Below are positions 39,986-50,817 of a stretch of DNA of 64,000 nt, piece after piece. Where the stretch lies: positions 186,001-250,000 of IMG/VR virus record IMGVR_UViG_3300047548_001236, one strand, 5' to 3'. Position 1 is the stretch's first letter; each line of letters starts with the position of its first letter. Under the pieces are notes generated by a model. The model saw nothing but the letters and a program-made list of their open reading frames with translations, ran no database searches and had not been told where the DNA came from. A program made the position numbers and the translations under genes.

Positions 39986-40235
39986 CAGACGTTCCAGTCA
40001 GACCATTGCACGAGATAGTAACGTCTACAAATTCGAGATTGCCGTCCTCTGACGCGTGTTCGGAAGCCCATTTATATGCTTCCTCGAAAGAAGCAAACCC
40101 CTCTGTCAGGTGAGCATACGAGTAATGACGCCAATAGTCTTCGTCATACTCAGATGGTTTTGGTGAAGGATAGAACAGGATGGGATGGTAAGTCCCACCC
40201 TGTGTATCTTCTGCGATACAGATTTTGTTAGTCAT
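39963..40235 (-). CDS. hypothetical protein
   Basis: ATGA-coupled to the ligase. Confidence 0.55.
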   Translation of the reverse strand: MTNKICIAEDTQGGTYHPILFYPSPKPSEYDEDYWRHYSYAHLTEGFASFEEAYKWASEHASEDGNLEFVDVTISCNGLTGTSVVYYFKR

Positions 40236-41572
40236 GCGAAGCTCATTGCCATTTGCTTGATCTCCAGAGCACGCTCGAGAGTATCGGTTTCGGTTTTGTC
40301 AGTGCGAACCTCATCAAAGCGAGGGTGAGACAGAGCATAGTGCTCACTGTCACGACCACGGGTGATGTCATTGCAGGTGACGGCGATAATCTTGCCGATG
40401 TACCAATCACGATTGCTGTTGATCTTCTCGAGCTGTTCATCGCTGAACCCCGAGCACGATCCCTTGATCTTGTCATCGTCGGTCTTGTATTCAATCGCAC
40501 CAAACGTCTTCTCACGCTTGGTTCCGATCCGACCTTCCTTGAAGCCGGTGACACGAACGTCAATCGTCATCTCAAGCTTCATCTTCAACTGATGCTTGCT
40601 GGTGCCGTCCTTGAACACACCATCTGCATCCTTAAGAATGCCACCTTCAAGACCCTGTTCCATCCAAGCTGTGACTTTGTCGAATGCTTCCGGAATGCTG
40701 GACACCAGATGAGATTCGATCAGTTTCAATTGACGGTGTTCAACATTTGCAAGGATTTCGCTGAGAGTCCGAAGACGCTTGGCATACTTGGTGGTGTTTT
40801 TCACCTTACGCGAAGCATCCGTATATTCTTCGGGAGTAACATAATCCCACAGATGGAACACGATCTTATCCATCGGAGGATTGTCAGAATTCAGAAGACC
40901 GTTGCTTTCCGCACGGTTCTCAGTCCCTTCAACAATCATCTCACCCATGTAGTGACCATCAGGCAGCACGTCGATCAGATCGTTTGCAAACGTGTAGTCG
41001 TACTGCTCACCGCTACGAGACAGGAACTCGATCTTACCACCGGAGACTTGCATCTCACGATACGTCCCATCTGCCTTCAACTGAATGAAAGCAGGGAACT
41101 TGATGTCCTTTGCAGTCTTGGCAGTAAACACACCGCAACGCATGTAGACAGGTTTTGTGATCAGATCGCCGAACACTTTGTTGATCTGCGTACGGCCACA
41201 GTTAATACGCAGATCGCGATTAATCACTTTGATCAGAAGATCGCGGTCGGTAGCATCCATCGAAAGGAACACGCGCTCCATCGCCTCGATCGCATCATTG
41301 CCAGTCACGAGACGTTCAGACAGCTTGTGCTCGAGGAAGTCGAGAGCTTGCTCGAGCGTAGTCGTTGCATTTTCCGAAACTGGGAAAGGATTGCCTCCCA
41401 GTTTCTTGTACCAATGATTCATCGTCAGATAATAACGATAGATCACCTTATCGTAGGTCATTTTCAGCACACGCTGTAGCAGAGCGTTGTCTTTGTGCTT
41501 CTTCAAAACAGCGACCTTGTGGTTCGAGCTGTTGCTGGCGTTCAGTTCCTCAACAATATTGTGGATGCTCAT
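40232..41572 (-). CDS. ATP-dependent DNA ligase (T4 gp30-like)
   Basis: QLKADG (motif I), GE, FHLWD, EGGILK, KMK, SHPRF. Confidence 0.93.
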   Translation of the reverse strand: MSIHNIVEELNASNSSNHKVAVLKKHKDNALLQRVLKMTYDKVIYRYYLTMNHWYKKLGGNPFPVSENATTTLEQALDFLEHKLSERLVTGNDAIEAMERVFLSMDATDRDLLIKVINRDLRINCGRTQINKVFGDLITKPVYMRCGVFTAKTAKDIKFPAFIQLKADGTYREMQVSGGKIEFLSRSGEQYDYTFANDLIDVLPDGHYMGEMIVEGTENRAESNGLLNSDNPPMDKIVFHLWDYVTPEEYTDASRKVKNTTKYAKRLRTLSEILANVEHRQLKLIESHLVSSIPEAFDKVTAWMEQGLEGGILKDADGVFKDGTSKHQLKMKLEMTIDVRVTGFKEGRIGTKREKTFGAIEYKTDDDKIKGSCSGFSDEQLEKINSNRDWYIGKIIAVTCNDITRGRDSEHYALSHPRFDEVRTDKTETDTLERALEIKQMAMSFA

Positions 41573-41879: not shown

Positions 41880-43040
41880 TCATTCATCAGAAACCCTTTC
41901 GTCGATTCTCATCCTCGTAACTTGGATCTCTCCCGACTTGTTGATCATTTTCAGATCACCAGCGCGATATGAAACCTTAAACACGTCACGGCTTGCTCCA
42001 ACTCGTGAACGAGCCTGTTTTAGATCTTTGAAGACAAACAAGTACGGGCTATTTAGTTCCTCTGTCTCCTGACCAGGAACATACACGACCTTCTTTCCGT
42101 ACGTGTTATACAACCCTGGCCCGTATGTTCCGTTCCCGTTGTCTTTCAGAACCTTGTACCCGTAGAGGCGGAACTCAGGATCGTTTTCGTTCAACAGAGT
42201 GTAGTTTTTGGGTTTGGCTTCACCTAAAAAGCGTGTTGCCACCATAGTTTCAGTATCAACGAGGAAGTATTCGCCGTCAGCGTTGACAACAACCGTTTTG
42301 AGATCACGTGAGAAAAGATCCTCCAAGTATTCCCCAGTCGACATCTCCTCTGTGATTTCTTTATCACGTTCGTAGTAGGTGAACGATTCGATGTCCGCTA
42401 ATACCTCCAGCGCACGTTCCAGTGTGAATTGTTCATCTTCGACTCGGAGACTGATCTCACGACCGTATGTTCCACCAATTTGTGATTCCAGCTCCTGCCA
42501 AGATGTGGGCAGACCCTTATCAATGGCGGTCAGAATCATGCGGATGTGTTCGGGTTTACCAATATGGTATCCCTTTGCGGTGTATTTGGTCAACCTAAGA
42601 AGACTGTTTAACGGATATCGAGTATTGGGATTGAAACGAATTGTCTTGGATGCGATGTCAGGATAAAAGTCTGGATGAAAGGTATGTTCCTTAGTATCGC
42701 AATCGAACGCGCCCATGCAAACAGTGAAGTCGAAATGCTCGAAGATCTTCTCAGCAGTCTCAAAGGTATCGTACGTCATGACTTGGATAATGCCACGTTC
42801 ACCTTTGTCATTGGTGATGTCGTTTGATTTGAACGTGACAGCACGATCGGAGATGTTGACAACAAAACACCCATCTTCTTCAATCAGAGTGTAGAATGCG
42901 TCGATCATGGCCTTATCGGTCTTGGGATACACATCATAATCGTTCGTTTCAGTCTTCGTGGCTCGAGACAGAACAGCACCGCCAGCAATGAAACATCCTG
43001 GCAGGTTAACTTCATATCCTTTGGGCATTCTACTCATCAT
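41880..43040 (-). CDS. Pol-beta-type nucleotidyltransferase (CCA/poly(A) polymerase head-like)
   Basis: FIAGGAV...NDYDVY and FDFTVCMGA motifs. Confidence 0.7.
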   Translation of the reverse strand: MMSRMPKGYEVNLPGCFIAGGAVLSRATKTETNDYDVYPKTDKAMIDAFYTLIEEDGCFVVNISDRAVTFKSNDITNDKGERGIIQVMTYDTFETAEKIFEHFDFTVCMGAFDCDTKEHTFHPDFYPDIASKTIRFNPNTRYPLNSLLRLTKYTAKGYHIGKPEHIRMILTAIDKGLPTSWQELESQIGGTYGREISLRVEDEQFTLERALEVLADIESFTYYERDKEITEEMSTGEYLEDLFSRDLKTVVVNADGEYFLVDTETMVATRFLGEAKPKNYTLLNENDPEFRLYGYKVLKDNGNGTYGPGLYNTYGKKVVYVPGQETEELNSPYLFVFKDLKQARSRVGASRDVFKVSYRAGDLKMINKSGEIQVTRMRIDERVSDE

Positions 43041-43914
43041 GCATCTCCTGTTTTGTCTAACCAATCTTTCAACTTAATGTAGTCGCTTTCCACCATGTAG
43101 ATGCAATTACCCGACCTCACGGCCTGTCCTTCGAGCACCTCAAGGAATTGATCCGATCCATCTTCCTTATACAGTCGATGACCGCTGTGAACCACAATGA
43201 TGTCCGTTCCCGTAAATGTATTCATTCGACTAATCTCCAATCACGACTGTAGTTGTTGTGTAGCATTCAAAATCGATTCGCGTTTCAGATCCATCTGCAT
43301 TGACTCGGTAGAGTTGGACAACGTGGTCGCTCTCGATCAATTCCGCAATCTCTTCGCGGACAACATTGATATCGTCTGAATCTCTCGTTGGTACGGACGG
43401 TCCACCACCACCGTAGCCTTGTGCCTTAATTCTGTACATTGTGGTATTTCCTCTTGATTTCATTTTCGATTTCTACGGCCATGATATTTACAAGCTCGTG
43501 TTCGGGATTCAGACCCATAATAACCGAGAGATCGTGAATCAATTCGTTCGATGCATTGCTTTCCAACATCAGCTCCGCACCGTTGACTACTGTTGAGAAA
43601 TTATAGCTGATATCGTTCCAGGATTTTCCCTGCCGAATGCATTTAATGAAGTAGTCGACGCCATCAACAGTTACCGTGAAATCATCAAGAGTCATGCCAT
43701 ACATCTCCAGGAAAGTCAGCTACCAAACGTTCATGATCGTTGGGATCATCGAACACAAAATAATCCCAAGGCATGTCGTCTCCAGTGCATCGGTATGAGG
43801 ATGATTTGATCCAAGTGTAGAAACGTTTGTATTTCGGTCCAAAACCTCTACTTCTATAGTGCCTGATACCATCTTCACCGTCATACCAAAGGATGCCCAG
43901 GACGTCTGATTCGT

Positions 43915-44490
43915 TCACCATATCCGCAGCTCCTCGATATTGACTGGAGTGTAATCGACTACCTCAACGCAAACATTGCGATAAGGTCCAGGAGGCGATT
44001 CCATGCTATGAATATGTCCGTGAACATTGAGCAGTTGCTTGGAGAAGTCCACGCTACTGTAGAGACCGCTTTCGTGACGTGGATCGTGAGTTAGGATCAA
44101 GCCAAACTCAGGATACTTACGCCAGAACATCACTTTCTCAAATAGCCAGCGACCTTCTGAGTCTTTGCCAGAAAGATAACGAATGTCATCGTGGTTGCCA
44201 ACAATCAGTCGCTTGTGGCCATTGAACTTACGCCAATCAACCTCGAACTTCGCCCGATGTTCAGGTGTGCGGTCATAGAAAACGTCCCCGAGGTGGTAGA
44301 CGATGTCATTGGGTTTGACAACACTATTCCAGCCTTCGAGGATGCGTTCGTTCATTTCTTCAACAGAATTGAAGTCACGAACACGACGGCCCTTGAAATC
44401 GTAGAACGTCAGTATATCCGGTTGGTTGAACCCCGGCTAATAGTGTGTATCAGAAATAACCCAAATATCACGGGCTTTTCTCGTATACAC
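43915..44490 (-). pseudogene. calcineurin-like metallophosphoesterase with in-frame UAG (44437-44439); pseudogene or recoded
   Basis: GTG 44490: MYTRKARDIWVISDTHY*PGFNQPDIL..., in frame with HLGDV, GNHD, LTH and HGHIH motifs. Confidence 0.75.
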
Positions 44491-44494
44491 ACTA

Positions 44495-44908
44495 TTAGAC
44501 CTCCTTTCTCCTAGACCATCTCTCTCCATTTTCGTACCCTTCTATATTTTTCAACGTGTCTTTTTGTTCAGGCCAATAATACGTAGTGTGCCTTATTTTG
44601 TGAAACAACTCATCTAGTGTTATAACATCATCTTGTTTTTTAGCTGATATGGAACAGTTTTTTGAATGGGTAATTATGTTACAGTTCTCGACATGGTATA
44701 ATATGTTAGGAAACACCCCAAGACGAAACCCACTGTTACGAGAAAACGTGTGGTCACGTACTACACCGGTTGGGTTAGATTTCGCGTTGAATACCCCGAT
44801 TTCGTTTATAACGGGGAACGACTCGACCATCAAATCAAACATACGGTATTTCCAGTCCGATTCAACGAAATAAATTTGATAGTCTGTTTTTTCCGAAAGA
44901 GGCAGCAT
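44495..44908 (-). mobile_element. HNH-type homing endonuclease (possibly N-truncated) inserted in the phosphoesterase locus
   Basis: RDHTFSR..GF..GV.P.IL.H..NC.II.H..N HNH pattern; AT-rich relative to neighbours. Confidence 0.65.
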
Positions 44909-44912
44909 TGTA

Positions 44913-44948
44913 ATGGGTGTCAGATATCACCCACATGTCTCTACTCAT
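44913..44948 (-). other. duplicated 5' fragment of the phosphoesterase gene (MSRDMWVISDTH)
   Basis: ATG 44948 overlaps the upstream gene end; encodes the WVISDTH metal-binding motif I. Confidence 0.75.
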
Positions 44949-45318
44949 CAGACACCTTCTTTCGTACAAACGACAATTTCTTACGGTCGATGTGGAAACT
45001 GAAATCGTTAGCCCACCGATCGCGTACTCTCTCGAGTGCGTTAGCGATTGATACGAACGCGCTGCGTTGCATCTCGTTTTTGGTCAGCTTCGATCCCTCT
45101 TCAAGAATAGCAATCTCGTCATTGAATGCTTTCAACAGCTTCGCTTCAAACGACGCAATGAACGCAATCTGTGCTTCGACCGCTTCCAGACGTTGGGTCA
45201 GCTTTTCAATCACTTCGTCTCTCGGATCGGGTTTAACCTCCGGTTTTTCATCAACCGGAGGAGGGAGCTGAGTTAGCAGCTTCTTTGAGATTGGAACTTC
45301 TTTAACCTCTGCCATCAC
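44941..45318 (-). CDS. coiled-coil hypothetical protein
   Basis: ORF track. Confidence 0.6.
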   Translation of the reverse strand: MMAEVKEVPISKKLLTQLPPPVDEKPEVKPDPRDEVIEKLTQRLEAVEAQIAFIASFEAKLLKAFNDEIAILEEGSKLTKNEMQRSAFVSIANALERVRDRWANDFSFHIDRKKLSFVRKKVSDE

Positions 45319-45508
45319 ATGAGGAACCCTTCTTTCTGAACAGCTTTCTTTTCCAGGTCAGACAGACAAACGAACTTTGCAGTGAACTTACCATCAGCAA
45401 GTTTGACAGTGGTATATTCCACATACTTCAACTGCGTCTGGTTGATCTTACGAATCAGCGAGGACAGCGTTTGATACGATTTCATTGTCGGTCTCCTTGT
45501 CTACCTCT

Positions 45509-45537
45509 AATATAGGAGAGTGAACTGACGGAGTCAA
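45509..45537 (-). promoter_or_regulatory. sigma70-type early promoter
   Basis: TTGACT-N17-TATATT. Confidence 0.8.
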
Positions 45538-45540
45538 CCG

Positions 45541-46647
45541 TCAGTTCTTTAGCAACGTGATTTTATCTGATGCACGGGTGATCGCAGTATACAACCAACG
45601 TTGCCATACATCTCTAAAACACCACGACTCATCGTAGATCAACACATTATCCCACTGACTACCTTGACTTTTGTGGCACGTGATAGCGTATCCATAGTCA
45701 AACTCTTGCGACCCTTTCAGCGTTTTCCAGTCAGGTTTAGCAGCGTCACTAACAAAGAAGCTCTTGTGGACCTTGACTTTAACAGGCAACTCATTAGTAC
45801 CATCATCACGATCCAATGTGTAATGGAAAAAGTTGGTCTTGTACTTCTGTTGGTTAATGCTCCAGATCGTAAACATTCCACCGTTGAAGATGCCCAAGTC
45901 ATGGTCATTCTTCAAACAGATTAACCGATCCCCTACAACAGGAGCGTCTGGATCCAGTTTCAACAGCTTACGGACTTTGCGATTGAGGTCATCTCTTGTT
46001 ACGTTTCGCCCGACAAGAATTTGACTCGCATTCAAAGCGTCTTGAGATGAGATCTTGCTAACGACACGACTTTCACCATAATCACCGAAATCGGGATATG
46101 TTCCGTTTCGGACTTGCGTTGCAAGATACACGATCGGGTTATCTTCTGCTTGACGGTGAATCTCTGTCAGCATCACATCAGGCTTTGCATCCGTGAAGAA
46201 ACCAGCACCTGAGACGGGAGGAAGTTGTGCAGGATCGCCGAGCACGAGAATTGGTTTTCGGAATGAAAGTAGATCCTTCGCCATTTTTTCGTCGACCATT
46301 GAACATTCGTCAATAATCAGCAAGGCAGCATCTTTCAAAATGCTACCATTCCGATTGAGACGGAATGTCACTTCGCCGGTTTTGTCATCGACATCTGCAA
46401 TATAGATCAAGCTATGGATTGTACGTGCTCCGACACATCCATTCTTTTGCATGACAAGCGCAGCTTTGCCTGTGAAAGCTGCATACAGAACATCACCATC
46501 GATTGTCTCAGCGAAATGCCTCGCGAGAGTCGACTTGCCCGTCCCTGCATACCCAAACACACGGAAGATTTGCTTCTTCTTGGATTCTTGATAGAACCAC
46601 TTATCGACAGCCTTCAAGGCTGCTTCTTGTTGGGGTGACCATTTCAT
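45541..46647 (-). CDS. dda: Dda/RecD-like SF1B DNA helicase
   Basis: GYAGTGKS, AFTGKAA, TIHSLIY, DECSM, GDPAQLPPV, HRQA, AITCHKSQGS, YTAITRA. Confidence 0.9.
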   Translation of the reverse strand: MKWSPQQEAALKAVDKWFYQESKKKQIFRVFGYAGTGKSTLARHFAETIDGDVLYAAFTGKAALVMQKNGCVGARTIHSLIYIADVDDKTGEVTFRLNRNGSILKDAALLIIDECSMVDEKMAKDLLSFRKPILVLGDPAQLPPVSGAGFFTDAKPDVMLTEIHRQAEDNPIVYLATQVRNGTYPDFGDYGESRVVSKISSQDALNASQILVGRNVTRDDLNRKVRKLLKLDPDAPVVGDRLICLKNDHDLGIFNGGMFTIWSINQQKYKTNFFHYTLDRDDGTNELPVKVKVHKSFFVSDAAKPDWKTLKGSQEFDYGYAITCHKSQGSQWDNVLIYDESWCFRDVWQRWLYTAITRASDKITLLKN

Positions 46648-47901: not shown

Positions 47902-49347
47902 TTAGTACCTCCCAGTTTCACGAGGAATGTATTCGCTTTCCATCAAAGCAGCTCGCTTGCGAATTGCTTCGAACGTGTCTTCGATCAACAGCTCACCGTT
48001 CTTGAACACGGTCCGCAGAATGTTTTGCTTGGATACCTCCTCGGGCAGCGTTCTGAAACCGCAAGAACCAATACCACACTGGTATTCGAGAGCAAGACGG
48101 CCTTTTTTGGACTGCTTGCCCTTGTCAGTGATCGGGTCTTTACTGAAACCTTCCCACTCACCGTTGTTGATACGAATGGCCGAAGCCTTCATCGCATATT
48201 TCAGCGAATCGCGGTTCCAAGCCTGCAGAAGACCACCGCCCATACCGAAGGCGATGTTATCGGCACTGAACCCAGCAGCTTTGAGGTTCTCAAGGATAAT
48301 GGGCAACGTGTGTTCGTTGATACCATCTCCCTGAATCACTCGGATGTAAGGAGGAAGGACTTTATATCCCTTACTGTTGATCGTGTATCCAAACTTCTCA
48401 GCAAGGATCTTAACGACCTCGACAGGAACTGTTTCGGGATCACCACTGTCAGGACGTACCACCAAGGTGCCGCCCATGTTGACGATCTTATCTTTCAGCT
48501 TGTCGCCCCAAAGATCACGGCATGCCGCATAGATGTCAAAGCTGTCCGAGACACATGCAAGGATCTTGCCAGGCCCACCAAACTTGTCCAGCATGTTTTC
48601 GAATGCCTTAACTTCGTTTTCACGGCCCCAAGAAGTAATCGTGCTGTGTTCAGAAGCGGGAATTGAGAATCCAACAACCTGATCAGTGTTGTAGTACGCC
48701 ATCACCCCTTCAAGAGCTTCGAACGTGTCGGTGCCCATGAAGTTGACAAGGTGTCCCATACCACCAAGGATTGCTGTTTCACCCGAGCTGGCACCACGAG
48801 CACCAAAGTCGTGCAGTTTGAACGTCAGTTGATCCATCACAGGAACATCCGACGTTTCGTGTAGGGCTTTAGCAATAAGCACCTTCATCTTGCGGCTCTT
48901 GGTCGCAACAGTGGAAGGATACCATACACCACGCAGCAGAGCGGTTTCAATGTACGAGGTCAGCCACCACAGACGAGGATCGGTGTTGACAACCTGCACT
49001 TGAACGTTGTGAGTTTCCATGAACGTTCCTTCCGGAACAGCCTGGATCTCGAGAGGGAGAAGCCCACCATACTCTTTGACGATGATCTCCCAACCTTCAC
49101 GGTTGAAAGGCAGGCCATGTGCAGTAACAATACGCTCTGCACGATCGATATCCTTCATCGTGATCGGAGTCAGTAGGTAGTCTTTGATGAATGCTTGCAG
49201 TCCAAAGAATACCGACATATCTTCACCACCACGTGACTCGATGTACGAGCTGATGTGAGTGGTTCCCTTGGGATATTGCATCCATTGGCTGAACTTGTAG
49301 CTGTCGGTGCGAACGATGGTACTGATAAAGCTAAGTACAGTCTTCAT
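47902..49347 (-). CDS. nadV: nicotinamide phosphoribosyltransferase (NAMPT)
   Basis: TDSYK.S...QYP, WYPSTVAT, LHDFGARG, SIPASEHS, VSDS, RPDSGDP, QGDG, FGMGGGLLQ. Confidence 0.95.
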   Translation of the reverse strand: MKTVLSFISTIVRTDSYKFSQWMQYPKGTTHISSYIESRGGEDMSVFFGLQAFIKDYLLTPITMKDIDRAERIVTAHGLPFNREGWEIIVKEYGGLLPLEIQAVPEGTFMETHNVQVQVVNTDPRLWWLTSYIETALLRGVWYPSTVATKSRKMKVLIAKALHETSDVPVMDQLTFKLHDFGARGASSGETAILGGMGHLVNFMGTDTFEALEGVMAYYNTDQVVGFSIPASEHSTITSWGRENEVKAFENMLDKFGGPGKILACVSDSFDIYAACRDLWGDKLKDKIVNMGGTLVVRPDSGDPETVPVEVVKILAEKFGYTINSKGYKVLPPYIRVIQGDGINEHTLPIILENLKAAGFSADNIAFGMGGGLLQAWNRDSLKYAMKASAIRINNGEWEGFSKDPITDKGKQSKKGRLALEYQCGIGSCGFRTLPEEVSKQNILRTVFKNGELLIEDTFEAIRKRAALMESEYIPRETGRY

Positions 49348-49399
49348 AATAGAAACTCCTTCTATTGTTTGTGTTATGCCAAGACTCTCTGTCCTGGGC
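49348..49399 (-). promoter_or_regulatory. AGAGA/GGAGU two-hairpin leader motif, copy A (nadV)
   Basis: CCAGGAC-AGAGA-GUCUUGG, short linker, AAUAGAA-GGAGU-UUCUAUU-AUG. Confidence 0.75.
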
Positions 49400-49404
49400 T
49401 TTGT

Positions 49405-49716: not shown

Positions 49717-50817
49717 TCACAGTACAGGAACAAAATAGTCGATCATGAAAGCATGATCTTCGAAGAACCGATCGCGCTGCTTTCCAATCTCATTCAGTGG
49801 AACCCAAAACGCTTTTTCAGCATCATCAGATCCTTTCACTTTGGGAAGCTCGCCAACACCAAGATCGATGTAGAACGCTTGGGTGATGGTACGCCCACGA
49901 GCCGAACGATTCGGAGCATCAAAAGTCTTGGATGCCTTGATAGACCCCTTTAGAACAGCAACAGGAACCTTGATCTTGGTTTCTTCTTTCAACTCACGAA
50001 TGCAACCATCAACCATCGTCTCTTCTTGGTTGAGGAACCCTCCGGGTAATGCCCATAAATTTTTTCCCGGCATGTCACCGCGCTTGACAAGCAGGATGTG
50101 ACCCGACTGAACCACAACAGCATCGACAGTCATGAAGGTCGGCGGGAACGGTGCAGCCTTCCACGCCTCTTTGTACTTCTTGATCATCTGGTATTCAACA
50201 AGAAGTTTACCCCATGCTCCACCAGTATTACTGTTATTTGAGATAATCCGTTTCATTTCCCAATGAGATTGTGAAGGCATAACTTCCCTGATGGAATCGT
50301 ATTCCTCGTAATCAGTGGAATCAAAAAGCGACTTTCGAATGTCGGTGGCATTGATACCATCGACGTTAGGCACTTCAACATGGTTCTTCCACTTCGGGAA
50401 GATATTCAAGTAGTAGCTAGTGTGATCTTTCGAGTGACCAATCAGGCCAACATCGTTGAAATGCGGGCCGAGTGTTTCATCAACGACCTTCTGCACTGCA
50501 TTGACCCACTTGTTGTCGTCATAGGGGTAGTCAGAGACAGGGACAACGAGAACACGAGGGCTGGTTGCGAAGCCTTTGAGACTGCCAGCATCCCATGAGA
50601 CGACTTCGTCCTTATAGACAGCATCGATCATGGCCTTGCGTTCTTGGAATGTGAAGGGATTTCGAATGCTCCGAGCAGCGAAACTGGATCCGACTACAAC
50701 GACAACCTGTTTGGCTTGCTTGAGCGCGGCATCAATGACCGCCTTGTGTCCATTATGAAACGGCTGGAATCTCCCTACAAACACAAGAGCATCCCGCATT
50801 TTAGTGGTATTTGACAT
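49717..50817 (-). CDS. nadM: bifunctional NMN adenylyltransferase / Nudix (ADP-ribose) hydrolase (NadM-Nudix)
   Basis: GRFQPFHNGH, NPFT..ER, NATDIR; Nudix box GG......ET...C.RELKEET. Confidence 0.93.
   Translation of the reverse strand: MSNTTKMRDALVFVGRFQPFHNGHKAVIDAALKQAKQVVVVVGSSFAARSIRNPFTFQERKAMIDAVYKDEVVSWDAGSLKGFATSPRVLVVPVSDYPYDDNKWVNAVQKVVDETLGPHFNDVGLIGHSKDHTSYYLNIFPKWKNHVEVPNVDGINATDIRKSLFDSTDYEEYDSIREVMPSQSHWEMKRIISNNSNTGGAWGKLLVEYQMIKKYKEAWKAAPFPPTFMTVDAVVVQSGHILLVKRGDMPGKNLWALPGGFLNQEETMVDGCIRELKEETKIKVPVAVLKGSIKASKTFDAPNRSARGRTITQAFYIDLGVGELPKVKGSDDAEKAFWVPLNEIGKQRDRFFEDHAFMIDYFVPVL

Follow-up and report, generated by a model that had tools for sequence, protein, structure and literature searches.

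A mobile endonuclease cassette in a phage phosphoesterase gene carries a replacement gene start with a 12-base insert that may be skipped by ribosomes

The locus lies on the minus strand of a 64,000-nt stretch of jumbo phage DNA (positions 186,001 to 250,000 of the IMG/VR record IMGVR_UViG_3300047548_001236), hereafter the window. The first 14 codons of a metallophosphoesterase (MPP) gene (MSRDMWVISDTHYN; copy A) are found at 44948-44907, from the ATG at 44948 to CAT TAC AAT. The frame of this stub runs on into junk and stops at 44862. It is followed by a 137-codon open reading frame (44908-44495) encoding the C-terminal part of a putative homing endonuclease. A GGAGG ribosome-binding site (44504-44500) lies inside the last codons of this frame and precedes a GTG start at 44490, from which a second copy of the gene start (copy B, GTG + 16 codons, (M)YTRKARDIWVISDTHY, ending ..RDIWVISDTHY) is read to 44440. 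An in-frame upstream ATG at 44529-44527 is an alternative start. Copy B is followed by the 12 bases TAG CCG GGG TTC (44439-44428), located between TAT (Tyr) and AAC (Asn), in frame and in the codons that follow metal-binding motif I. The body of the MPP gene (NQPDILTF ... ELRIW, 170 codons and a stop) then continues in frame from 44427 to 43915. It is native to this phage and intact, with the GD, GNHD, H and GHxH motifs, and was assigned to the calcineurin-like phosphoesterases by profile searches (Pfam PF00149, 27.8 bits, above the cut-off; phrog_547). Motifs II-V are thus in the body, while motif I is present only in copy A or copy B, each separated from the body by the element or by the insert.

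To exclude an assembly error, which had been named beforehand as a refutation, the source sequencing run, from a freshwater sample, was examined. An independent assembly of this run spans the region identically at a word depth of 172, and identical pieces occur in two other studies, including an identical 194-nt contig across the insert in one run. The observation made in the preliminary description therefore holds, with all elements where they had been placed.

We next compared the locus with related phage loci (designated L and a number). Four relatives (L005/L050, L048, L049 and L051; 66-85% protein identity) carry the intact gene, MSRDIWVISDTHYNQPD, and continue ..TAC AAC CAA CCA where the window is interrupted. 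Copy A is identical to the intact gene of L005 at 39 of 40 nt, although the flanks are about 75% identical. The window thus carries a 482-nt insertion after codon 14 (44909-44428), lying between 44909/44907 and 44428/44426, with ends ambiguous by 3 nt because CAA occurs on both sides. The preliminary description had correctly calculated a 482-nt join, but had taken SDTHFN as the usual sequence and TAT TAG CCG GGG as the removable bases. Since intact relatives read DTHYNQPD, the native sequence is SDTHYN and the extra bases are TAG CCG GGG TTC. Copy B, described there as a synonymously diverged second start, is not a recoded version of copy A but part of the mobile element, and resembles another natural allele (L048).

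A 297-kb relative (L128) carries the full-length cassette with the identical 12-nt insert. Window positions 44904-44425 are identical to L128 at 476 of 480 nt (99.2%), against 71-77% in the flanks, and identity then decays gradually into the downstream gene (28, 26, 23, 25, 23 and 20 per 30 nt). The element is therefore mobile. The intact endonuclease has 299 aa (P0002), and the window retains only residues 163-299, the C-terminal 46%. A 531-nt deletion (531 letters between 44904 and 44907 in the relative) removed the leader, the promoter-like TATAAATA, the ribosome-binding site and the zinc-finger/NUMOD3 N-terminal half, and created the ATG of the remnant, which has no ribosome-binding site of its own. 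The three substitutions against P0002 inside the remnant are all non-synonymous. The GGAGGTCTAAT..GTG arrangement preceding copy B is also seen in L128 and L131. T4-type late promoters were sought in the window, but TATAAATA is not enriched.

The assignment of the protein as an HNH endonuclease, as made in the preliminary description, is unproven. Pfam searches gave no HNH hit and only a weak NUMOD3 match (E = 0.004), and phrog HNH hits were weak. Foldseek found no significant match in PDB, and in BFVD it found uncharacterised phage proteins (some named DUF7487) and only weak HNH matches. The family has an invariant R-D-H ... N ... N on a predicted strand-strand-helix unit, which fits an HNN variant. 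An alignment of the family compared by hhalign with the HY03 MobA homologue gave a probability of 0.1%, and tblastn against phages gave no T4-like hit, so that homology to MobA was rejected. Megablast against GenBank phages found no close cultured relatives, and the endonuclease has only distant partial matches in cultured jumbo phages.

Loci of the endonuclease family, which comprises 704 representative clusters, were surveyed. At least 30 of 38 IMG/VR loci sit directly upstream of an MPP gene, and L131, L277, L278 and L280 are further cases. A DNA pattern built from the endonuclease 3' end plus the ribosome-binding site returned only chance hits. In about 25 distinct cassettes copy B is interrupted at the motif-I codons and nowhere else, either by one base (UUU_C or UUU_U), by 4-12 bases starting with a stop and mostly with matched flanking codons, or by 22-26 bases carrying the take-off hairpin of T4 gene 60. 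Skipping the insert restores a full-length MPP with all motifs in all 19 interrupted loci tested, while all of more than 110 endonuclease-free homologues are uninterrupted. Two relatives that lost the endonuclease (L186 and L221) keep the gap and an intact gene.

The inserts show non-random features that would be expected of recoding sites. Of 17 inserts of 4 nt or more, 16 begin with a stop, mostly UAG-C or UGA-C. In 11 of 17, the codon before the stop and the last triplet of the insert share their first two bases, for example CUA UAG CUA, CUU UGA CUC, UCA UGA UCG, AUC..AUC, GGU..GGU, CAU UAGC CAU/CAC and UUC UGAA UUU, and three more are CAU to UAY. For the 11 inserts scored first, p is about 1e-6 for the codon match and about 1e-15 for the leading stops, although matched flanking triplets could in principle arise from the way the inserts are generated. 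All eight 1-nt inserts are C or T after UUU, the only bases that let tRNA-Phe re-pair in the +1 frame. Several insert lengths (1, 4, 5, 7, 10, 11, 22 and 26 nt) rule out read-through, and in the three 6-nt cases read-through would break the D-x-H spacing. Two cassette types (L143 and L152) carry GGT + TAGCCTTCGGGCTA, which is letter for letter the T4 gene 60 take-off hairpin after a Gly codon. However, the same 14-mer is common as a hairpin in phage intergenic regions, so its identity to that of T4 may be convergence and is weakened as proof of common descent. The 22-nt gaps of the L143 group differ at 0-2 of 22 positions, against 25-43% at third codon positions, but since copy B is also little diverged, recent spread explains this and we dropped it as evidence of RNA-level selection.

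In the window, a predicted RNA hairpin (44497-44437) spans all of copy B. Its 5' arm (44497-44485, endonuclease stop and GTG start) pairs with the 3' arm (44450-44438, AT ACA CAC TAT + TA of TAG), giving a 13-bp stem plus an inner stem, with the 3' arm ending at the codon before the stop (minimum free energy -26.6 kcal/mol, z = -7.4, 0 of 200 shuffles as stable). The same feature, with co-varying arms, occurs in L130, L131, L147, L149, L161, L164, L277, L278 and L280. In 66-nt windows the median was -24.8 for the hop class, against -13.7 for the +1 class and -7.6 for 67 native genes. A take-off stem-loop that includes the stop, as in gene 60, is absent, since 3' of the stop the window has only a weak hairpin (-7.1 kcal/mol, z = -1.0). 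A matched landing codon is also absent: the codon before the stop (UAU) and the triplet before the resume point (UUC) mismatch at the middle base, and only L154 and L153 are comparably poor. Published data nevertheless indicate that P-site re-pairing tolerates mismatches (10.1101/2022.08.31.505936).

Taken together, our results suggest that the region is a decaying copy of a mobile homing-endonuclease cassette of the gene 60 kind, inserted into a gene not previously associated with such cassettes, just after the codons for metal-binding motif I (S-D-T-H). The analysis itself establishes that the cassette displaces the native first 14-15 codons, carries the endonuclease gene, supplies at its 3' end its own ribosome-binding site, start codon and replacement copy of the displaced codons so that the MPP frame is rebuilt downstream, moves between phages, and has lost the promoter, ribosome-binding site and DNA-binding half of its endonuclease here. 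What follows is inferred from sequence alone, as no translation, protein or cleavage data exist for any member. Rebuilding the gene would also rebuild the target of the endonuclease, and the 12-nt insert in copy B would break this target and protect the carrier from its own nuclease, which is the established role of the 50-nt insert for T4 MobA. To make MPP, ribosomes would have to pass the insert, most likely by a stop-hop: with UAU in the P site and the poorly terminating UAG-C in the A site, peptidyl-tRNA would leave the message and decoding would resume at AAC 12 nt downstream, giving the native ..DTHYNQPD... The 13-bp hairpin may favour this, as its 3' arm is exactly the stretch of mRNA held between the P site and the ribosome's exit and could re-zip behind a ribosome that slides forward. 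We are highly confident of the cassette anatomy and mobility and fairly confident of programmed recoding in the family, but only marginally inclined to believe that this particular copy still yields useful MPP; the explanation as a whole is favoured with moderate confidence.

The interpretation given in the preliminary description, in which an endonuclease gene and a UAG-containing insert form a gene 60-like cassette whose insert protects the cleavage site and is skipped by bypass, read-through or RNA excision, is thus partly supported. The split gene, the duplicated 5' end, the 12-nt insert and the mobility of the cassette are confirmed, and the gene 60 analogy gains strong support at the level of the family. 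RNA excision and the SDTHFN sequence are not supported, and the endonuclease is a truncated remnant and no MobA homologue. Its own caveats, the lack of a matched landing codon and possible pseudogenisation, still stand.

The strongest alternative is that the MPP gene of this phage is simply dead, the insert protecting the DNA from the endonuclease or being a repair scar, and terminating translation. This remains possible, although we consider it less likely than not. Besides the unmatched landing codon, the cassette is very young (4 differences in 480 nt against L128), so that an intact body does not show selection after insertion, and the element is already in decay. A dN/dS test, which had been proposed beforehand, was uninformative, since synonymous sites are saturated between lineages and pN (about 0.09-0.13 for the body against relatives) is not raised. 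The hairpin buries the GTG start, and its opening probably depends on ribosomes finishing the endonuclease frame, which has lost its ribosome-binding site, so copy B may be poorly translated. The phosphoesterase is probably dispensable, as no essential role is known. On the other hand, this copy keeps every family feature that has no use in a dead gene, namely the ribosome-binding site, the start, a conserved N-terminal peptide, a stop in the weakest termination context and a hairpin ending at the codon before the stop. The intact bodies and recoding signatures of the family, the retention of the gap in L186 and L221 and the identical insert in L128, with its intact endonuclease, also argue against this view.

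A second route, UAG read-through by a near-cognate tRNA or a phage-encoded amber suppressor, would give a phosphoesterase with four extra residues (X-P-G-F) after DTHY. The insert is in frame, UAG followed by C is the leakiest context in E. coli, TAG is the rarest stop among the long open reading frames of the window (8 of 65), and jumbo phages often carry many tRNAs. However, no tRNA was found in the 64 kb scanned of the 283-kb genome, long frames are intact under the standard code, and TAG ends ordinary genes here, including the gene just upstream, so that genome-wide TAG reassignment or suppression finds no support in the window. Furthermore, the cassette of the closest relative (L277, endonuclease 66% identical, same gene subtype) has a 10-nt insert that read-through cannot rescue, and most family inserts are out of frame. 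We therefore regard read-through as unlikely. Termination followed by reinitiation was rejected, as there is no in-frame start codon between the stop and 44355 and the product would lack motif I. Removal of the 482 nt from the RNA by a group I intron or another ribozyme would restore the frame, and the candidate boundaries end in U and G, but this is very improbable: Rfam searches with permissive filters (E up to 10) found no intron or other relevant RNA in the window or in the 1-kb full-length element, only about 68 nt lie outside the reading frame, an intron would not need its own ribosome-binding site, start and gene 5' end, and the 531-nt deletion would have destroyed a 5' intron core. Nothing was found in favour of an assembly or sequencing artefact, which is all but excluded by the data above and by the same insert in a diverged relative.

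The closest known system is the MobA/gene 60 bypass cassette of T4 (Bonocora et al., 2011, cited in PMC5009743; Manning and Atkins, 10.1101/2022.08.31.505936). In both, an endonuclease gene is inserted inside a conserved catalytic motif of a phage enzyme gene, the element carries a stretch homologous to the displaced target (HomR in T4, 67-81% DNA identity; copy B here), and this stretch is followed by a short non-coding insert that starts with a stop. In both, insertions are recent within clades although the element is old, and the endonuclease is progressively lost while the insert stays. In contrast to T4, the target is MPP motif I rather than the topoisomerase II large-subunit gene (Topo2L), the endonuclease is unrelated, and the gene is not split into two working subunits, since the whole 5' end is duplicated and one stub is discarded. 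The inserts are 1-26 nt rather than 50 nt, spanning +1 frameshift sites, short stop-hops and medium gaps, and the short-hop class has its hairpin 5' rather than 3' of the stop.

Synthetic stop-hops and classical +1 frameshift sites (Weiss et al., 1987; E. coli prfB CUU UGA C; yeast Ty1 CUU AGG C), reviewed in PMC5009743, share matched codons flanking a stop, a slippery P-site codon followed by a stop or by CGG (UUU CGG), a codon decoded slowly in some bacteria, and a weak termination context, with C after the stop. The present sites would be natural, utilised cases tied to a mobile element, although the site in the window has non-matching flanking codons and a 12-nt step. In the nrdA gene of Aeromonas phage Aeh1, split by the gene of the free-standing endonuclease MobE (Friedrich et al., 2007, discussed in 10.1101/2022.08.31.505936), function is kept by a work-around rather than by an intron or intein, as is inferred here, but there the two halves associate as proteins, whereas a 14-residue stub cannot complement and the element supplies a new 5' end instead. 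In Allomyces mitochondria, an endonuclease gene reportedly travels with a copy of the adjacent end of its target, creating a hybrid atp6 and leaving the resident end as a remnant (Paquin, Laforest and Lang, 1994); that case involves the 3' end, and no recoding insert. Yeast mitochondrial byp elements (Lang et al., 2014, cited in PMC5009743) are short inserts in coding sequence skipped by ribosomes, with tolerance of imperfect take-off/landing matches, but they are 27-55 nt GC-cluster-like elements scattered over many genes and not tied to an endonuclease or a single target motif.

On present evidence it is more likely than not that a large family of phage endonuclease cassettes, not found described in the literature searched, protects itself from its own nuclease by placing a tiny insert in a replacement gene start, and relies on three grades of programmed recoding to keep the gene working: UUU_Y +1 frameshifts, 4-12-nt stop-hops driven by a hairpin that re-zips behind the sliding ribosome, and 22-26-nt gene 60-like bypasses. 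This would make gene 60 one instance of a general strategy and provide the first natural, utilised stop-hops. Translational bypassing has for decades rested on one phage example, T4 gene 60, whose relatives all lie in topoisomerase genes; the 2022 survey says that the cassette "remains unique", and the 2016 review of recoding (PMC5009743) states that no natural in-frame stop-hops are known. If the inference holds, the family supplies dozens of natural variants with different step lengths, codon pairs and hairpins, with or without the endonuclease, which could be used to dissect how ribosomes leave and re-find a message and to test the idea that mRNA re-pairing at the ribosome exit drives forward sliding. 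The cassette would also show a third way, besides introns/inteins and split subunits, for a selfish nuclease to sit inside a gene without destroying it, namely by carrying a spare gene start. In practice, these phosphoesterase genes are currently called as N-terminally truncated open reading frames, as in L128, where the call is a 146-aa frame from an internal ATG.

To assess whether the arrangement proposed in the preliminary description is present, we first read the minus strand of the window across the locus. An ATG at 44948 opens MSRDMWVISDTHYN (copy A), followed by a 137-codon ORF at 44908-44495, while a GGAGG at 44504-44500 and a GTG at 44490 open a second version of the gene start, (M)YTRKARDIWVISDTHY (copy B). 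Copy B is followed by TAG (44439-44437) and CCG GGG TTC, after which AAC CAA.. continues in frame to 43915. The preliminary observation was therefore confirmed. The downstream part encodes a calcineurin-like metallophosphoesterase (MPP), as indicated by matches to PF00149 (27.8 bits) and phrog_547 (E = 2.5e-34), and is about 50% identical to the phosphoesterases of Sinorhizobium phages phiM12 and phiN3. The window belongs to a 282,855-bp IMG/VR contig, a jumbo phage. An independent assembly of the probable source run spans 43400-45600 without a difference at a word depth of 172, and a run from another study holds an identical 194-nt contig across the insert, showing that the structure is real.

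To determine what the intact gene looks like, we compared the locus with four relatives that have an uninterrupted gene beginning MSRDIWVISDTHYNQPDILTF (..DTHFYDEDMITY in L051), namely L005/L050, L048 and L049, with 85% protein identity, and L051, with 66%. These relatives have neither an endonuclease gene nor the extra 12 nt. It follows that the native motif is DTHYN and not DTHFN as had been assumed in the preliminary description, that the window carries a 482-nt insertion between ..TAC AA and C CAA.., and that the surplus bases inside copy B are TAG CCG GGG TTC. Copy A matches L005 at 39 of 40 nt although the genomes are about 75% identical, while copy B resembles the L048 allele at synonymous sites.

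The 137-aa product of the ORF clusters with a 299-aa protein (P0002) encoded in a 297-kb phage scaffold (L128), which shows the complete arrangement. In L128, copy A (..CAT TAT AAT CAA) is followed by a 38-nt leader with TATAAATA and AGGAGG, the 900-nt endonuclease gene, GGAGGTCTAATAGTG, copy B with the identical 12-nt insert, and the body of the MPP gene. The window lacks 531 nt of this arrangement, comprising the leader and the zinc-finger/NUMOD3 half of the protein, and the ATG of its ORF was created at the deletion junction, so that the ORF is a remnant of a larger endonuclease gene. From 44904 to 44425 the two phages are identical at 476 of 480 positions, whereas immediately downstream the identity falls to 28, 26, 23, 25, 23 and 20 per 30 nt, and the wider flanks are 71-77% identical. 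This is the signature of a recently transferred homing element with co-conversion of the adjoining exon, and it also shows that copy B and the insert belong to the element.

The endonuclease belongs to a large, almost wholly uncultured family with 704 representative clusters at E up to 1e-3. No full-length homologue was found among GenBank phages, and no relationship to MobA was detectable. The N-terminus weakly resembles the I-TevI DNA-binding domain and NUMOD3, while the C-terminal domain has an invariant R-D-H..N..N on a predicted strand-strand-helix unit but matches no solved structure. The HNH assignment made in the preliminary description is therefore plausible but unproven. In at least 30 of 38 IMG/VR loci, as well as in the further loci L131, L277, L278 and L280, all from metagenomes and some possibly not independent, the gene sits directly upstream of an MPP gene in the same architecture: a stub of the native gene ending just after the second His of S-D-x-H-x-x-H, a leader with TATAAATA, the endonuclease, an RBS and start, a replacement N-terminus, and the body.

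In about 25 distinct cassettes the replacement N-terminus is broken at the motif-I codons and nowhere else, with insert boundaries set by homology to the expected protein. The interruptions fall into three classes. Class A is one extra base, always C or T after UUU, and was found in eight loci (UUU C GG in L140, L146, L151 and L157; UUU C UCG in L150; UUU U in L144, L173 and L174). Class B comprises inserts of 4-12 nt in 15 cassettes, for example CUA UAG CUA (L161), CUU UGA CUC (L158), UCA UGA UCG (L155), CAU UAGC CAU (L278), CAU UAGC CAC (L280), CAU UGAC CAC (L130), UUC UGAA UUU (L164) and AUC UAGCGAGG AUC (L147). L131, L149 and L277 have CAU to UAY landings, and poorer matches are seen in L153, L154 and the window/L128 (UAU UAG CCG GGG UUC). 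The L158 cassette seems to need two events, a +1 shift in a run of seven T right after its ATG and the CUU UGA CUC hop (L158:3340-3400). Its start region forms a perfect 10-bp hairpin (GUCCGAAGUA / UACUUCGGAC), although a homopolymer sequencing error is an alternative explanation for the first event.

Class C inserts are 22-26 nt long, begin with GGT TAGCCTTCGGGCTA, end with GGT or GGA, and were found in L143, L241, L186, L221 and L152. The 14-mer TAGCCTTCGGGCTA, a UUCG tetraloop hairpin, is identical to the take-off hairpin of T4 gene 60. However, it occurs in 98 viral contigs (IMG/VR loci L179-L258), mostly as extended intergenic hairpins (GGGTAGCC..GGCTACCC). One occurrence lies in a Topo2L gene 60-type site (L210) and six loci are in phosphoesterase genes, namely L186, L191, L221, L226, L241 and, tentatively in view of its atypical upstream peptide, L219. 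The phosphoesterase genes of L186 (gap near L186:606) and L221 (minus strand) keep the 22-nt gene 60-like gap and the replacement N-terminus but have lost the endonuclease and the native stub, with different deletion end-points, while their bodies are intact (177 and 173 codons). This parallels the states reported for MobA in which the endonuclease is lost and the bypass is kept.

Six cassettes (L156, L160, L162, L163, L165 and L168) have an uninterrupted replacement N-terminus whose residues differ from the stub. In L156, L160, L165, L168 and L174, where the replacement N-terminus is uninterrupted or the cassette looks old, the native stub upstream has decayed (for example SDTDFGH, ITEVHVVH and ISETHIRH), which fits older insertions. 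Skipping the insert in silico restores a complete MPP with all five motifs in 19 of 19 loci tested, and none of more than 110 endonuclease-free homologues is interrupted. Sixteen of 17 inserts of 4 nt or more start with a stop, mostly followed by C, and in 11 of 17 the flanking triplets share their first two bases. For the first 11 inserts scored, the corresponding chance values are about 1e-15 and 1e-6, respectively. Many of the lengths are not multiples of three, so read-through cannot explain them, and in the 6-nt cases read-through would break the D-x-H spacing.

We next analyzed the predicted RNA structure around the inserts and found a hairpin specific to class B. The stretch immediately 5' of the stop, ending exactly at the preceding codon, pairs with a stretch that contains the start codon of copy B and the endonuclease stop. 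In the window, 44497-44485 pairs with 44450-44438 (13 bp), and the 61-nt segment folds at -26.6 kcal/mol (z = -7.4) with none of 200 shuffles as stable. L149 (-33.5, z = -9.0) and L131 (-27.4, z = -6.4) behave alike. Contiguous stems of 9-14 bp whose 3' arm ends at that codon, or one nucleotide short of it in L164, occur in ten cassettes, while the best stems average 6.5 bp in 68 native genes. For 66-nt windows the median energy is -24.8 kcal/mol in the class B/C set, -13.7 kcal/mol in class A and -7.6 kcal/mol in native genes. The arms differ between cassettes but stay complementary, with two to four Watson-Crick pair types at pairs 4-11. We infer that the hairpin may first couple the start of copy B to ribosomes finishing the endonuclease ORF and that, because its 3' arm is the mRNA held between the P site and the ribosome exit, it could then re-zip as the ribosome slides forward. 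This is the kind of driver proposed for gene 60 (bioRxiv 10.1101/2024.12.09.627546). An in-frame ATG also lies about 13 codons upstream of the GTG of copy B (window 44527-44529, with equivalents in L128, L130, L131, L147, L155 and L158), inside the conserved ..EYxNGxRW.. codons of the endonuclease read in another frame. It gives a semi-conserved extension (M-E-x-D/N-G-x-E-R-R-S-N), is the only in-frame start in L131, and could act as a nascent-peptide element or be a by-product of the overlap.

Taken together, these results suggest a mechanism in which the element would target the most conserved DNA of the gene, insert just downstream and supply a new gene start, so that the host gene is rebuilt. 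Since rebuilding would also recreate the target, a small insert would break it, and ribosomes would compensate by +1 slippage or hopping. The immunity role is established for T4 MobA and its 50-nt insert (Bonocora 2011, as summarised in 10.1101/2022.08.31.505936), whereas here it is inferred. For the window, the anatomy, the mobility and the truncation of the endonuclease are demonstrated by our analysis, while immunity and passage of the 12 nt are inferred from sequence alone, as are translation and cleavage throughout the family. Two routes of passage are possible, a UAU-to-UUC hop giving the native DTHYNQPD, or read-through, since the insert is in frame. However, three points count against function in this particular copy, namely the mismatched landing triplet, the buried start codon now that the upstream ORF has no RBS, and the youth of the insertion, which makes the intact body uninformative. 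The interpretation in the preliminary description is partly supported, with strong family-level support for the gene 60 analogy.

The logic of the arrangement is that of the T4 MobA/gene 60 cassette, from which it differs in the endonuclease, the target gene and the insert length. In the literature searched, bypass cassettes are described only in topoisomerase genes and the cassette is called unique, it is stated that no natural stop-hops are known, and nothing was found on phosphoesterase genes with endonuclease-linked recoding. The copy in the window is a partly decayed member of the family.

Comparison of the surrounding region showed that about 0.7 kb directly downstream of the phosphoesterase gene (window 43201-43934) is absent from both relatives, as L005 and L128 join 43934/43927 to 43201/43222. 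This stretch holds three small ORFs (78, 92 and 77 aa), of which the 92-aa one has a marginal Pfam hit to a fragment of T4 Gp23 major capsid protein (E = 1.8e-5), and it may be another insertion. The 400-aa gene next to the phosphoesterase in L128 (L128:7668-8870) carries a precomputed Pfam Gad2 (PF26128) hit, while its 394-aa homologue in the window (41880-43064) gave no Pfam hit at E up to 1e-3. A 96-nt island (window 49308-49402, L128:721-816) is 95.8% identical between the two phages within flanks that are 80-86% identical, and could be a regulatory element or a recent exchange. The neighbourhood (window 47902-49347, 49717-50817, 40232-41572 and 45541-46647) encodes NAD-salvage enzymes (NAMPT and an NMNAT-like nucleotidyltransferase fused to NUDIX), an ATP-dependent DNA ligase and a Dda/RecD-like helicase.
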